Assembly (NCBI GenBank): GCA_001179505.1
Contig: CDMY01000985.1
Coordinates: 1-7,250 of the forward strand
Source of the DNA: Vitrella brassicaformis CCMP3155
Taxonomy: Eukaryota; Protista; Chromerida
Direction: 5' to 3'
Length of the DNA: 7,250 nucleotides
The notes under the pieces were generated by a model. That model was not told the DNA's origin. It ran no database searches and saw only the letters and a list, made by a program, of their open reading frames with translations. This document shows, in pieces, positions 1-7,250 of this stretch. The first letter of the stretch is position 1. Each line of letters begins with the position of its first letter. Both the position numbers and the translations under genes were made by a program.

Positions 1-1006
1 TCTCTCCACCCGTTACACAGCAATATACCCTAGCTCACAAGCTCGCAGTGGTTCGTCTTGCCAAGCTGGCAATCCTGACAGACACGTCAAGACGTCATTT
101 GCCGTCACGCTGCGTATGCTCCAGCAGATCTCGAGGTGGCTCTTCCGATCTCAAGCACGCTCCCAACCAACCTCACTGACTCGCCTTGCTTCAGTGTGTC
201 AAGGTGAATAGCTTGGAAGCGAACAGGAAAACGTCAGGCCCGGTTGCATTGTGGCGACGAACAACGGCAAAGGAACAGGACTGATGAATGGGCATCGCTG
301 GCCGTCAGGAAGACACACATCGTTCGGTTGTAGTTCGTCAAGCAAAATGCACAGCCATTCTACATTACACGGGGTGGGCGAGTGCATGTCATGATATCAA
401 TGACGGATCAAGATCATGGATGATTCATGTAATCCATTCAGTGAATCACTGGATCAAGTGCAGGCACCAGTGGGTTGCTTTGCGTGAGAAGTGGCCGTGA
501 TCCTGGACTGGCTGGCCACGAAAAGACGGGCCTCATCGATGTCACATCACCCATACATGATTGACAGGAGACAATACATATGATATACCTGAATGTATAT
601 CCGTATACGTACGTGTCCATGCGTATCTACACTACTCATACTCGTAACACTGCGTAGCTACATTACTCAGCATGCAGCTTACGTATACATCGGCACGATC
701 ACAGCCCATTGCAAACGCAATATCATGACACTCTTGTGAGGGCTCAACGCACTATCAGCAACATTGTGTCACTGATCGCGCTATCTGCCAGCACCACCAA
801 CCTACACGCACGATGGCCGATGGACAGAAAAACGGACAAACGGAAAAAAAAGCGAAGTGATCAACATGGACGTCACTCGCTCTTTCAGAGACACACGTGT
901 ATTGTTCGCCATGGATGTGTGGTGTACGTGTGTTTCCAGACGCACTCGAGCTCGATGATTGTGAGGGATGTTTCTGTCGACGAATGGCGTGCGTGTGCAG
1001 GCGATA

Positions 1007-1032
1007 AGTCAGTTAGACAGTCAGTCAGTCAG
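1007..1032. repeat. Degenerate (AGTC)n tetranucleotide repeat
   Basis: agtc agtt agac agtc agtc agtc ag at 1007-1032. Confidence 0.75.
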
Positions 1033-1834
1033 GCGGCTGTGTGCGTGTGACGTGATGAGTCGGTGCTTCTATGTGCTGCCAAACAGAGCACTTGCATTTG
1101 CTGCAAGCCGACAGACGTCTCTCTCTCACGACGTGCATACACGGCACGGGGGGCCAATTCAATCAATCAGTGCCTGTGGATGGATGCCCATGCTGTTTTC
1201 TGGCGTATGCATGTGGGACGGAAAGATGGATGGATGGGAGCACATTGGGCGGGGAGCCGGGTGGGCTGAGACACAGAGACAATACATTTTGAGACACCAT
1301 GGGGATACACGGGACATGAGAGCACTGCACTCATACAATTAAGAACGCCGCATGATGTGACTGCACATGGCTACCGAAACTGTTCCCCTTCAAACTTTCA
1401 GCGGTCTCATACCAATTGTGGACGGGTGATGCCAGATCGATCGATCAAAGAGACATATCAAGAGATAGAGAAAAGTCACTCATCGTTCCGCCTGAGACCG
1501 TTGGCACATGGAACCAAGCCGTGTATGCATTGCTGCTGCTTTGTCTGGTGGTTTTTGGTGGTTCCTTTGTCGGCTTCCAGCCTTTGGTTCGGAGAAAAGA
1601 CAGACGTCATGGATTTCTTTGCCCGAGAACACGACAATTGATTGAGTGACTGCGCTGCGAGCTTCTTCCATGTTGAAGATAGATTCATTCTCGCAGTGGT
1701 TCACTCACAATGAATTCCCATTCACGTGCGCAATGAGCGTCCTCTACACGAATCGTGCGGAAAAACTCGCACGATACGAATGCAGCAGCTCGATGTATCA
1801 TTCAGCATCCCTATCGACAAGATGGCACCTTTCG

Positions 1835-1858
1835 ACATTGCACATTGCACATTGCACA
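1835..1858. repeat. 7-bp tandem repeat (ACATTGC)x3.4
   Basis: acattgc acattgc acattgc aca read directly at 1835-1858. Confidence 0.85.
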
Positions 1859-2385
1859 CACGACGCGACAATCAAACAGACAGCAAAACAGCACATGTCG
1901 ACACGAGAGAGAGACATGAAAGCAAAAACATGGATTCCCAAACCAGTCGCCCGATAGCTGAGCAGCCCACCATGAGAGCGCGTATGACACCACAGAGGAG
2001 AAGAGAAACTGATTCAAAAACACATGCCTGGGAGTAAAAAACACGTGTGTATGTCACGAGGTCGATGTGACAAAGAAGTGACTGGTCGACCGCCTGTCTG
2101 ACCAACCACATATGCACACTCGTATGTACACATGCACACTTCGCATGCTTTGCGATCAGTCACAAGGGCCAGCTGACACGAGGACACAAGCATCGCTCTA
2201 CGGATGGGGACGTCCACAAAGGCCATCACACATCCACGCACCGTTTGCCTCCGCCTATCTAGGCCACTGTAGGCAGTCAGACCGTGCCAATTACATCTGA
2301 TATGCATGAAAAGCACGCAGACAGAATGTATGAGTGTCAAAACATCACGAGAAAATGCAACATGAGACAAATGCTCGTATCGCTA

Positions 2386-3679
2386 CTAGACGTCGAATTT
2401 CTTATCGAAGTCTTCTGGGGGCTCCTTGTCGCCCCACCTTATGTCAGTCTTCACGTGCCATGTATAGATCTGAACGACACACAGGAACCATCTGCGCACA
2501 GCACAATTTGGCTTGCTCATCGCGCATATACCTTTGTGCAGTTGTCTGCGAGTGGTTCTATGTCCCACTTGCTGACATTCGTCTGCTCGAGGAAATCGCT
2601 TTCCAGACGGCCTTTCTTACTCCGGATTTTCCACAGCAGTGGGGGGTCCTGCAGAAAGTGCCTCACGTGCAGGCCAAAGCCTGCTGTGTCAATCGGATAC
2701 GCACGACCCGTCTATACAGATACATACAGATCCACACAGAAAGGCAACGACATGAGCATTGGTCGAATCCATCCGCCCTTCGTGTTGCAGATTGCTCGTT
2801 CGCTCACCCCCCATGCGTTGTACTTCTTGATTTTGCCGGTGGTCGAGTTGACGTCACAGTACTGAGCTACTCTGCGTGCCCCCGCCAGGCCCACGGGCCA
2901 GGTGCCGATGTTGCGGACCTTCCGCAGCTCATGGAGAATGCGAATATCATATGCATTGTCGTCATCAGCAAAATACACAACGGAATCCTGCAACAGAAAT
3001 GAGACAATCCCCCGATTGTCTGCTGTGTTCATTGGTGTTTGTGCACCTCATATGCTCTCTTCAGCTCCGCATCGGCCTCATTTAGCACAATGTCCCGTAT
3101 CAGCCGAATGGCCTCGTTCCTCTGCTCTGCCCCCCTGGTTCTCAATCCAGATGAGCTACTGACGTTCAAGTGAGACCAATGCAATAGGAGGCTGTCATTC
3201 AGCCACCTCTCGACTTTGGCCGTCCTGTTGACGCTGTCCTCGACAACAATCATGTGCACGTTACTGGCTGCGAGACCGAATGTGTTGAACAGCCGCGTCA
3301 GATCCAGCCGCTGCGTGATTCGCCTGTACGTGGGAGTGATGACAAATACCCACCGCAGGCCGGGCACCCAGTGATGGGAGGGGAAGAGGAAGGGCGAATC
3401 AGACTCACTGAGGACGTGACGGGCGGTGAGGTGAGGGGCACGCTCTTGCCTTCCTCTCATGGCAGCACGAGGCGTTGATGAGTCAACCGAGCTGCTGAAC
3501 ACCTCAAGATGCGCCGTTCTCGAGGCGGCGTGCTTGTCGCCATCCAGCATCACGCCCATAGTAGTCAGCATCAGGGGGAGCGGACCGCACTGTCGCTTGA
3601 TCAGGAAAAAACATAAGAAGTAGAGTGGGGCAACCACCAGCACAGCGAGCGCACACGGCGCAGAGAAGCGAAAGCGCAT
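2386..3679 (-). CDS. Glycosyltransferase family 43 protein (beta-1,3-glucuronosyltransferase, GlcAT-I/B3GAT-like), type II membrane protein, 4 exons, about 358 aa
   Basis: Exons in transcript order: 3679-3047, 2987-2808, 2711-2532, 2469-2386 (TAG at 2388-2386). Introns 2988-3046 (59 nt), 2712-2807 (96 nt) and 2470-2531 (62 nt) are all GT..AG and phase 0. The spliced protein has the GT43 motifs in order: VFVITPTY, IVVEDS, RGAEQRNEA, VVYFADDDNAY (DxD), WPVGLAG, AWGTGRAYPIDTAGF, GRLESDFL, IEPLADNCTK|IYTWHVKT. These match human B3GAT3 as recalled (YVVTPTY, LVED, RGVEQRN, VYFADDDNTY, WPVGLVG, AWEPSRPFPVDMAGF, GHLESS, LEPRAANCTRVLVWHTRT). The N-terminus MRFRFSAPCALAVLVVAPLYFLCFFLIKR is a signal anchor, and six N-x-S/T sequons follow. 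The ORF-track start at 3745 is a TTG; the first in-frame ATG is at 3679. Confidence 0.92.
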
Positions 3680-3878
3680 CGCTCGAAGGGCTGATTGCTT
3701 CACGACACCGTCGTCAAGGAAACGACCGGAAAAAATTCCGCGCAACGGTGCACGGAGTTTACAAAAACGGCGGATTTTCCCTATAAACCGTTCGTTCTGC
3801 CGCTCGACTCAGACTCTTTCTGAGCGACAGACCGAAGGCGTGCTTAGGCTGCCAGAACTTCGCCAGCTCATCAACGAA
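3680..3878. promoter_or_regulatory. Putative bidirectional promoter plus both 5' UTRs between the divergent GT43 and GT47 genes
   Basis: Only 199 nt separate the two divergent ATGs, so both transcripts most likely initiate in this interval. It contains TATAAA (3782-3787), the palindrome GTGCAC (3748-3753), and the inverted repeats CGGAA-N4-TTCCG (3727-3740) and CTCAGA-N5-TCTGAG (3808-3824). The function of these motifs is inferred. Confidence 0.55.
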
Positions 3879-6208
3879 ATGACTGTTCTGACGCGGCCAT
3901 TCATCCTCATTCCTCTCGCCGTTTTTGGCGTCGGCCTCTTCGCTCTGGACGCCCTTCACCTCTATCCAGCGTCCCTACACAAGACAGCGGTTTCAGCGTC
4001 CCTGCACAAACTCCTTCGGAGCGTAAGAAGCGGAGGCAAGACGAACAATACCCCAGCAGCAGGAGAGCGGGAGGAGAGAGAGGACTTCGCTGATCTTGAA
4101 GCGCTGGAGAGCAAGATGGATGTCCCGTTTTACGTAAGTAAGGGGGGGGATTGCATCGCTCCTCTCGTCGAAGCCTTTGTAATTGCAGGTCTACGAGACT
4201 CCCGCGCTGATGGAAATGTACAACCGTTGCCAGGAGCCAGCAAGGGCAATCCTCGAAGGGGCGTGGCCGGCCCATGTGCCGTCTGCAATCAAGAAGAAGA
4301 TAGGTAGGACTGATCGCCGGTGCGCTTCACATCAATCTGTCGTGTGTGTGTGATAACACAGGGGAGATCTTCTGGCTGGATCAGCTGTGGAACGACACGT
4401 GGCGCACATTCGATCCTGACCAGGCGCTCGTCTATGTCCTCCCCATCTATCCAGGTGCATGGGTGTTGGGCAGAGAAGCAATTGAGGGGCCTCTTCAATG
4501 CATCTGTGTGTTGCAGCGCTTCTGTTCGAGGGGGCATGCGAGGGTGTCAGTGGAAAGGAAACTCACGAACTGGCCACTCGCGCCGTTCATGAGGTAAGCA
4601 AATGGGCACACATTTCGCGAATAGTTTCCTCCTCGACTCTGTTGTCCCATGATTCATTCAGATCACGGCAATGCCCTACTTTCATCGGCATGGCGGGTTG
4701 GATCATGTCGTCATCGTAAGCAGGGAGGGGCATGGAGAAGCTCGCTCGCACAACTTCTGCCGCGCTCTGCAGGGGACGGACTGGCGCCTTCGTGGATCGC
4801 GCCATGGAACTGTGAAGACGGTTTTTGGATCGGCATTTCAGGACTTCGTGGGGAACATCACGTGGGGCCGATTCAAGGCATTTGAAGGTGAACGAGAATG
4901 AATCAATTCGGTGTGCGCCATAAACGGCCTAATATTTTTCAGGGAGGAAGCCGTGGCGATGCAGTGTCACAGTGCCGTTCACGTGAGTGAAGAGAGGGGC
5001 AACTAAGCACACACATGGCATGGGTGGCTGAATCGATGGGCCTTTGTGTCTGTATAGTTCTGCCATGACCCACGTGCAGAAGGCCTACGAGCCCTTTACC
5101 AAGGAGAGCCTGCTGAAGCGCGGCTTCATTGCCCCTGAAGACGTCTTCGAGGACGACCGTCTGGACACCGCATTCGACCCGCTCTCGCGACGCGACTGGT
5201 TCGCGAGACACTACAACCTTTTCTTTCAGGGTGAGCGAGCAGTGGGGGGTGGATTGACGCATACAGCTCGTCCCTTTTCTTGCATGTGGTCTCGTGTTGC
5301 GTGATCCATTGATGGGTGCAGGGCAAGTGGACGCTCGCAAGGGATATCGCTACCGCCGTCTGGGAATGCAGCACCTCGCTGGCTGGCGATTCAGGCCCAA
5401 CACAAGCTCCAACGTCCTGGTCTCCTCGTCCAAGCCCATGACCTATCAAGTGCTGGACGCAGACGGCAAGGAGCGAAGGGAGCCAATTCCTTCCTGCCCG
5501 CGCAAAGACGGCATCAATAAGGAGGTCTTCAGCGGAAAGATGGGCAAATTTGAGCGGTGCAATGGGCAGATGGCTCCGGAGAAAGAAAAAGGGGCTGGTC
5601 AGCAGAGTGACAAGCGAACAGATCGTGGCCGCTATGCGGCGGCCACATTTCTGCATCGGCTGAGCAACTCGAAGCTGAATCTCTGCTTTCGGGGCGATGA
5701 CCTTACAAGCAATCGGTACACCGATGGGCTGTGGGCGCGGACACTGAACGTGCTGGTCACCGAAATAAAGGAATTCTACAGGAGCGCGATGCCTTTCCAA
5801 TGCGAGATTCCGTGGAGGTGAGTGAGTGGGTAAGTGGGTGAGGAAGAAAGATAGGAGAAAGAAAGCAGCCTTCATGCACACTTATCGAGTGCCAATGCCT
5901 GTTGTGTATGAATGTATCCGAACAGGAACTTCACGTATGCAATTGACGGCCCTGAGTTCGTTCGGTCCCCTCGCGAATCCCTCACTCCCATACTGCAAGA
6001 GGTCTACGATGATCCTGCGGCGGTGAGGGAGAGGCTTCGGCTCCAAGACTACTACAGCCGCAAGGCTCTTTGGAATGCGCCTGGGAGCACCACGGCCAGA
6101 AGCACACTGCGCGCCATGACACGGCAGTGTCTCACTGACGAGATAAAGATCGATTTCATACAGAGGACAAGCGGGAGCGGTGAGACATACCAAATGACGG
6201 ACACGTGA
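3879..6208 (+). CDS. Glycosyltransferase family 47 (exostosin-family) protein, type II membrane protein, 10 exons, about 566 aa
   Basis: Exons: 3879-4133, 4189-4303, 4362-4454, 4517-4593, 4662-4715, 4773-4887, 4943-4982, 5058-5230, 5322-5817, 5926-6208. Total 1701 nt = 566 aa plus TGA. All nine introns are GT..AG, 55-108 nt, with compatible phases. Exostosin-like motifs appear only after splicing and in the right order: VPFY|VYETP, GEIFWLDQLWNDTWRTFDPDQALVYVLP, MPYFHRHGGLDHVVI|GTDW, VTVPF, YNLFFQG, SKLNLCFRGDDLTSNRYTDGL, MPFQCEIPWR|NF. N-terminal anchor is RPFILIPLAVFGVGLFAL. The intron at 4716-4772 is 3n and stop-free, so it is the least certain (585 aa if retained). Confidence 0.88.
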
Positions 6209-6800
6209 AATCAACAGATACGAGTAGAACCGCGTGTACCCATGTGTTCAGGCATGGTGGGTGACATTGGGGAGCATCCGCTGTTCGCGCCGTGTGCGTT
6301 TCCAGACACGTTGGCCCGGCTGGAGGAGCAGAGGGCCCACGATACATAGTATCAATCGTGTTGGTTGTGTGGCGCATGTGTTGAATTAGACAGCGCGCCG
6401 CCGCGCGTTCGTGTGGATGTATTCTTCCTGTCCGAGAGCTAACGTCGGCGTATGGATGGATGGACTAATCCAGAGTCTAAGCCAGCCAGTATGTGTAGCA
6501 TATGTGATGTGCAGTCGGTTTGTGTTTTGCTTTGTTTTTCATGGCTGGATTGCCATCTGACAGTAAAATGCAAGACAAATTCAGTCAAAAAGTCCGCGTC
6601 ATGTGTTTTTTCAGGCCTATATTGACAAGCCATCGTTGTCTCACCCCTTTGCCCGCGTGCGCCGTATCAGTATAGCACGCACATACGTATATATCCATAT
6701 CCCAGCTACGTAGCACAAAGTCGAGGCCATCCACACGTCACACGTCCATATTCATTCGAAAACAAAAATATCGTCTGATGTCCCTGATTCTGACACTCTG

Positions 6801-7049
6801 ATGCGAAGTGGACACCTCGCATCGTGTTTGTATATGTGGATCTGTGTCGCGAGTCCCGTCTATCCCTCCGACAAGGTGTGTACGGACCGGAAGGAAGAGC
6901 AGACAGACAGGAGGATGCATACATGGAATGAATGGAGGTGTACCGACCGTCAGCCGCACACACAACCGACCTGTATGCGGGTGTCCCCGCATCCCCGTGA
7001 CCACCGCCTCCGCGTATGTGTGCAGCCGACGGGCGTGTCCACCGTGTAT
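6801..7049 (+). CDS. Possible 5' part of a secreted protein gene (signal-peptide exon plus 24-nt microexon), continuing beyond the window; product unknown
   Basis: ATG at 6801 gives MRSGHLASCLYMWICVASPVYPSDK, which resembles a signal peptide, and ends at AAG|GTGTGT (donor 6876). An acceptor tatgtgtgcag| ends at 7025. It is followed by 7026-7049 (PTGVSTVY, phase 0) and the donor GTGAGC at 7050. The downstream sequence is repeat-rich and intron-like. No homology was recognised. Confidence 0.35.
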
Positions 7050-7134
7050 GTGAGCACAAAGCGTTTGTCCTGCTCGTGCCCATGTGTATCTCGATGGATG
7101 TGTTGCGTGTCTGTCGATGGGTGCGTGCGAGTGA

Positions 7135-7210
7135 CTGTCTGCCTGTCTGACTGCCTGACTGCCTGTCTGCCTGGATGGATGGATGTGTGTATGGATGGAT
7201 ACATGGATGG
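7135..7210. repeat. Compound tetranucleotide microsatellite: (CTGN)9 followed by degenerate (GGAT)n
   Basis: Read directly: ctgt ctgc ctgt ctga ctgc ctga ctgc ctgt ctgc (7135-7170), then ggat x3 (7173-7184) and further atggatgg units to about 7210. Confidence 0.85.
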
Positions 7211-7250
7211 GAATCGATGGGGGCGTATGGGAAGAAGAGCGTTGAGGAAG

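Follow-up and report, generated by a model that had tools for sequence, protein, structure and literature searches.

In the genome of Vitrella brassicaformis CCMP3155, a coral-associated alga, glycosyltransferase (GT) genes of family GT43 and of a divergent GT47-like family are linked non-randomly. One instance of this linkage lies in the stretch analysed here (the window), which is the entire 7,250-bp scaffold C985 (contig CDMY01000985.1) and contains only two genes of interest, a GT43 gene on the minus strand (positions 2386–3679) and a GT47-like gene on the plus strand (3879–6349), arranged back to back. The original prediction, made from this sequence, was of two spliced, intact type II glycosyltransferases of families GT43 and GT47 lying head to head, and this description is borne out by the gene models, the Pfam matches and the single N-terminal anchor found in each protein; the 199 nt said to separate the ATG codons are likewise there, with the start codons flanking positions 3680–3878. 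The two genes are best explained as functional members of a family-level linkage that recurs in a dynamic region of the genome, the linked enzymes presumably serving one class of glycan; for this reading as a whole, the case for and the case against appear about evenly balanced, and a pathway shared by the GT43 and GT47-like proteins is plausible.

A GT47-like gene is the immediate neighbour of two of the nine GT43 genes in the 72.7-Mb genome and is located two genes away from a third, the neighbours being identified from genome-search coordinates and consecutive public accessions. The layout of the pair is divergent in the window (CEM38452/CEM38453, consecutive accessions), convergent on scaffold C682 (CEM29825/CEM29826, again consecutive) and tandem on C212, where a GT14-like gene stands between the two (CEL94220/CEL94222). 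Under random placement among 22,817 genes, at least two immediate pairs would arise with a probability of 7e-5 and at least three pairs within two genes with a probability of about 2e-6, values that assume independent placement, so that tandem or segmental duplication, or a general clumping of GT genes, would inflate the significance. The caveat attached to the original prediction, that numerous paralogues or short intergenic distances might make such a pairing expected by chance, stands in part: the spacing of the two genes is ordinary for this genome, but the pairing of the two families is commoner than chance would produce. The GT43 genes at the three linked loci belong to two subclades and the GT47-like genes to three lineages. 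GT14-like genes recur in the same surroundings: three of the six GT14-like loci are on scaffolds that also bear a GT47-like gene, with GT14, GT43 and GT47-like genes together on C212 and C682, and GT47-like and GT14-like genes on C419. The neighbourhoods on C212 and C682 resemble the window in that the GT43 and GT47-like families adjoin each other in the same genome, but these loci add GT14-like and other enzyme genes, show other orientations and involve other subclades, whereas the window has the two genes only.

Two details of the GT14-like neighbours can be added. On C212 (25385–27431), a GT14-like gene (Branch, PF02485) is head to head with a GT43 gene, and on C419 (64187–69340), a GT14-like gene is located ~2 kb downstream of the closest GT47-like paralogue of the window gene, in convergent orientation.

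The spacing within the window is a different matter. The pair had been put forward as a candidate for co-regulation, but with a median intergenic distance of 92 bp in Vitrella and an excess of close head-to-head pairs (PMC4501334), a gap of 199 nt is ordinary and co-regulation is not readable from it.

The GT43 gene (B3GAT-like, 358 amino acids (aa)) consists of four exons on the minus strand (3679–3047, 2987–2808, 2711–2532 and 2469–2386, the last one including the stop codon), with GT..AG borders and all in phase 0. The reading from the reverse strand is identical to the public model CEM38452.1 (A0A0G4H408, here P0025). The HMMER and Pfam comparison suggested with the original prediction confirms both family assignments, PF03016 being passed narrowly by the public GT47-like model, P0147, and PF03360 matched by P0025 at 156.3 bits (cut-off 27) over profile positions 2–206 of 207. 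The solved structures of human B3GAT2, B3GAT1 and B3GAT3 align with ~230 residues of the protein (110–341) at E-values of 7e-39 to 2e-32. Its DDD (DxD) motif for metal and nucleotide-sugar binding is part of FADDDNAY (2958–2966, minus strand), which aligns to FADDDNTY of B3GAT1/2/3, and its GRLES matches G(M/H)(Q/L)ES of the solved B3GATs; the Glu of this ES motif is, we assume, the catalytic base. Each of the two window proteins has one hydrophobic N-terminal segment; that of the GT43 protein, a predicted type II signal-anchor (residues 9–27, encoded at 3599–3655 on the minus strand; mean Kyte–Doolittle value of 2.74 over 19 residues), fits a type II Golgi enzyme.

After chromerid proteins, the top matches of the GT43 protein are animal and choanoflagellate B3GATs with 36–43% identity, and neither IRX9/IRX14 nor any other plant protein is found among the best 120 of the 603 matches. 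In a tree of chromerid and animal proteins, the GT43 proteins of Vitrella and Chromera form one clade outside the animal set, with two old Vitrella subclades. The tree and the ranking of matches agree with the published clade D, which holds the non-plant GT43s and is separate from the plant xylan clades (PMC4449007). Compared with its paralogue on scaffold C130, the GT43 gene has a ratio of nonsynonymous to synonymous divergence (dN/dS) of 0.41 and no stop codons, and is under purifying selection.

Two further observations concern this gene. Its three short introns (within 2470–3046) differ from those of C130 at 14 of 217 nt (6.5%), less than the synonymous divergence of the exons (dS of 0.22), which possibly reflects selective constraint on introns of such small size, or gene conversion in patches. 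In P0029 (an ENA metagenome protein of 333 aa, called on a contig of 1,139 nt), which is an environmental relative of the GT43 protein, a methyltransferase domain of the FkbM type (PF05050) precedes the start of a GT43 domain within a single open reading frame (ORF).

The homology-supported model of the GT47-like gene encodes 589 aa on the plus strand, in exons 1–6 (3879–4133, 4189–4303, 4362–4454, 4517–4593, 4662–4715 and 4773–4887) and 7–11 (4943–4982, 5058–5230, 5322–5817, 5926–6179 and 6252–6349, including the stop codon). Every border is GT..AG, the phases are consistent, internal stops are absent and the introns are 55–108 nt long. This structure departs from the original prediction at two points: the gene had been ended at 6208, but the stop codon at 6206–6208 is inside the last intron (6180–6251) and the true one is at 6347–6349; and the stretch 4716–4772, through which an ORF had been read, is an in-frame intron of 57 nt. 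Exons 5–11 are found at 99–100% identity in P0011, a 397-aa protein called on a contig of 1,454 nt from the JGI records; this contig is shorter than the corresponding genomic span (1,652 nt) and hence represents spliced RNA, so that the gene is expressed and is spliced as modelled. Relative to the C419 paralogue, dN/dS is 0.48 and stops are absent, and this gene, too, is under purifying selection.

The public counterpart of the GT47-like gene, CEM38453.1 (A0A0G4H411, here P0147; 510 aa), contains exons 2–11 exactly and starts at an internal Met at 4116. Consequently, it is missing the predicted signal-anchor (residues 8–26, encoded at 3900–3956 on the plus strand; mean Kyte–Doolittle value of 2.33 over 19 residues), which is kept in the paralogue P0006 and at C419. 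The upstream start at 3879 is supported by the 80% identity of exon 1 to the N-terminus of P0006, by the same start and anchor at C419, and by an excess of synonymous (pS of 0.107) over nonsynonymous differences per site (pN of 0.053) in exon 1. Both CEM38453.1 and the model of the C419 paralogue, CEM11577.1 (506 aa), begin near the internal sequence MDVPFY and, judging from these comparisons, look truncated at the N-terminus, without the conserved first exon that encodes the anchor. The window thus corrects two details of gene models, restoring the N-terminal anchor that CEM38453.1 lacks and placing the 3' end of the gene correctly.

The family assignment of the GT47-like protein is less straightforward than that of its neighbour. 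Exons were searched singly, and whole-protein searches were made with the public models P0025, P0147, P0011 and P0006. The only Pfam domain matched by P0147 is PF03016, at 36.5 bits, a borderline pass of the cut-off of 33.4; its paralogues score 36–58 bits. Single exons remain below the Pfam cut-off (best E-value of 0.14 for GT47), and a search of the genome with PF03016 at E-values up to 0.001 does not pick up the window gene. As originally noted, the protein is a stand-alone GT47 without a GT64 half, and the GT64 (PF09258) loci of the genome are on five other scaffolds, unlinked to the window. In the ESM Atlas, 25 of 30 feature matches are PF03016 clusters, which places the protein among generic GT47 clusters. 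The AlphaFold model of P0006 (mean predicted local distance difference test score of 71), a protein that is 80% identical to the window gene product in exon 1 and 73–90% in most other exons, has its best matches in the PDB with EXTL3, EXT1 and EXT2 (E-values of 6e-7 to 1e-5), followed by other GT-B enzymes at 1e-2 or worse; the template modelling scores against the exostosins are low (0.32–0.37), and the C-terminal half of the model has a large, low-confidence, lineage-specific insert.

Sequence searches with the GT47-like protein hardly leave Vitrella. Searches of PDB sequences with exon 8, P0006 and P0147 retrieve nothing, even at E-values up to 10, and no match to the EXT1, EXT2 or EXTL3 chains was detected. 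A HMMER search with exon 8 among 1.84 billion representatives returns five proteins at E-values up to 0.001, namely Vitrella paralogues and two metagenome fragments, with no plant protein retrieved; a word search with P0006 finds 17 proteins, all from Vitrella or JGI records, and a scan of metagenomes with an alignment of the GT47-like proteins finds no relatives. The genome itself contains at least 16 loci of this clade and ~9 more canonical PF03016 loci that score up to 95 bits and appear to be better candidates for IRX10 than the window gene. The window protein is a very divergent GT47 from an expansion specific to Vitrella, and cannot be recognised as either IRX10 or EXT.

The history of the locus can be gleaned from a search of the whole window DNA against the genome. 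The GT43 half (1904–3706) is 88% identical to C130, and the GT47-like half (3877–6576) is 82% identical to C419 and 77–80% to two copies on C698. The similarity to these paralogues ends at both start codons, at 3706 for C130 and at 3877 for C419 and C698, and the 170-bp core of the intergenic region between these points (3707–3876) matches no other place in the genome. Along the GT47-like gene, the identity to C419 varies as a mosaic, with 52–74% in 4716–5057 and 90–98% in most other segments, exons and introns alike. In P0001, a protein from the JGI records, the first 165 residues are those of the window gene product and the remainder is C698-like, as though the window gene and a C698 copy had been combined in a hybrid. 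The mosaic identity and P0001 suggest, at the sequence level, gene conversion or recombination between paralogues, or else chimeric transcript assembly.

These observations can be combined in a tentative mechanism. The genes for two Golgi-type, single-pass (type II), inverting glycosyltransferases share the divergent upstream region of 199 nt (3680–3878), a presumed bidirectional promoter. The GT43 enzyme is of the B3GAT type with a GT-A fold, keeps the DDD, LES and WH motifs, and would most likely pass beta-linked glucuronic acid (GlcA), or a similar residue, from a uridine diphosphate (UDP) sugar to a galactose-type acceptor. Its partner is a stand-alone, highly divergent enzyme with a GT-B fold from the Vitrella expansion of at least 16 copies. 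The pair is one instance of a recurrent linkage of GT43, GT47-like and, often, GT14-like genes located in duplication-prone, gene-converting, repeat-bounded regions, and the linked families would work on one common type of wall or surface glycan, the linkage presumably being kept or re-created for that reason.

Several observations weigh against the recurrent linkage having such a functional basis, in addition to the possible inflation of its significance by duplication or clumping. Head-to-head pairs in Vitrella are only modestly co-expressed (PMC4501334), and for the GT43 gene, no expression evidence was found. The orientation of the two genes is different at each of the linked loci. Furthermore, the partner family is absent upstream of the paralogues at C130 and at C419 and the similarity ends at the start codons, from which it follows that the head-to-head arrangement is not a duplicated or conserved unit. 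The strongest rival explanation is that genome dynamics alone, without any shared function, brought the genes side by side, in a very compact genome where each of the two families has undergone a lineage-specific expansion. Only the window locus shows this arrangement, orientation varies across all linked loci, the identity of the GT47-like gene to its paralogue is mosaic, many copies occupy small scaffolds that end in repeats, and the short intergenic distances fit as well. However, the linkage recurs between different subclades far above random placement, the GT14-like genes recur at the same loci and both window genes are under purifying selection; we regard this explanation as a serious contender, although less probable than functional genes in a recurrent linkage. 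A more technical possibility is that an assembly error joined the GT43 and GT47-like halves into a chimera, as could be suspected from a scaffold of only 7,250 bp with repeats at both ends and with halves that resemble different loci. Yet each half differs by 12–18% from its nearest paralogue and is therefore a copy of neither locus, the unique junction core offers no shared repeat to mislead an assembler, Ns are absent, and both genes have public models on this scaffold, so that an artefact is barely credible.

The remaining alternatives assign a particular product to the pair. In animals, the proteoglycan linker and chain enzymes XYLT, B3GAT3 and EXT belong to GT14, GT43 and GT47, respectively, and the co-occurrence of the same three families on C212 and C682, and of two of them on C419, would be accounted for if they made a GlcA-containing, glycosaminoglycan-like chain on secreted or wall proteins. 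The GT43 protein, nearest to animal and choanoflagellate B3GATs and with its motifs kept, is better served by this animal analogy than by the plant one. The other components fit less well: the Xylo_C domain (PF12529) was not found in the genome by a search that had no positive control, the window contains no GT14-like gene, the GT47-like protein has neither a GT64 half nor a detectable sequence tie to EXT1, EXT2 or EXTL3, the GT64 genes of the genome are unlinked, and many other activities exist within GT14 and GT47. A search of the genome for GT25 (PF01755) gave zero matches. Altogether, such a pathway seems unlikely. A still bolder proposal is a genuine biosynthetic gene cluster for a eukaryotic glycan, in which GT14-like, B3GAT-type GT43 and private GT47-clade genes would be exchangeable cassettes and whose product would be a GlcA-containing, proteoglycan-like polymer of the wall or surface; this, too, we consider rather unlikely. 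The xylan synthase module envisaged in the original prediction, by analogy with plant IRX9/IRX14 and IRX10, fares worse. The family pairing is alike, and the walls of Chromera velia contain small amounts of 4-linked xylose (2.0 mol%) and 2,4-linked xylose (0.7 mol%), uronic acids not being listed in the table of monosaccharides and linkages (PMC9293442). Nevertheless, the analogy is weak, given that the GT43 protein groups with animal-type enzymes, with plant GT43s missing from its best matches, and that no tie of the GT47-like protein to IRX10 could be detected, exon 8 of its gene having relatives outside Vitrella in two metagenome proteins only, while at least 7 other loci of the genome match PF03016 far better. 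The window genes do not appear to be orthologous to those of the plant xylan synthase complex, and a xylan-synthesizing role for the pair is very improbable.

The surroundings of the two genes add to the picture of a repeat-rich setting. The assembly comprises 72,700,666 bp in 1,064 scaffolds, and the ten largest ORFs in the flanks of the window (709–2370 and 6706–7204) contain no Pfam family. The final 781 bp of the window (6470–7250) and of scaffold C981 (6589–7369 of 7,369 bp) match each other at 100% in reverse orientation, and C981 bears a further GT43 gene (CEM38295.1). It is probable that the two scaffolds adjoin, in the order GT43, GT47-like, repeat, second GT43, in which case the second GT43 gene would be convergent with the GT47-like gene, ~5.7 kb downstream. 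A dispersed repeat occupies 6799–7250, with at least 20 copies on other scaffolds at 78–91% identity, and another repeat (1–94) recurs at 95–100% identity on 10 or more scaffolds, in several cases close to the end of a scaffold; no Pfam-recognisable ORF lies in either repeat.

Eukaryotes rarely have gene clusters for complex glycans, and little is known of the chemistry of chromerid walls. A full-text search for exostosin with Chromera retrieved no paper, and none of the papers retrieved that name both Vitrella brassicaformis and glycosyltransferase is about these families, as judged by title and abstract. If the linkage reflects a shared pathway, it would narrow the genes behind a chromerid wall or surface glycan down to a few testable candidates, and B3GAT-type enzymes would have a use outside animals. 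If the three families are indeed interchangeable cassettes, an alveolate polymer would be made by the same three families that animals use for the linker and chain of glycosaminoglycans.

Among the known systems, EXT1, EXT2 and EXTL3, in which a GT47 domain is combined with a GT64 domain, share PF03016 with the GT47-like protein and are the best structural matches to the P0006 model (E-values of ~1e-6), and differ from it by the GT64 domain, which it does not have, and by sequences to which it shows no detectable similarity. The plant IRX9/IRX14 and IRX10 proteins represent the identical pair of CAZy families, which cooperate in plants, whereas in the window, the GT43 protein is non-plant by the ranking of its matches and the GT47-like protein is lineage-specific and divergent; to our knowledge, the plant IRX9/IRX14 and IRX10 genes are unlinked. 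For the GT43 protein, the comparison is with the animal B3GAT1/2/3 proteins of GT43 (PDB 1V82, 2D0J and 1FGG/3CU0). The window GT43 protein belongs to a chromerid-specific clade with nine Vitrella copies, has only 36–43% identity to them, and shows WHVKT in place of their WHTRT motif, but it shares their type II topology, is collinear with them over ~230 residues, and keeps the TPTY, VED, EQRN, FADDDN, PID-AGF, LES and NCTK..WH motifs.

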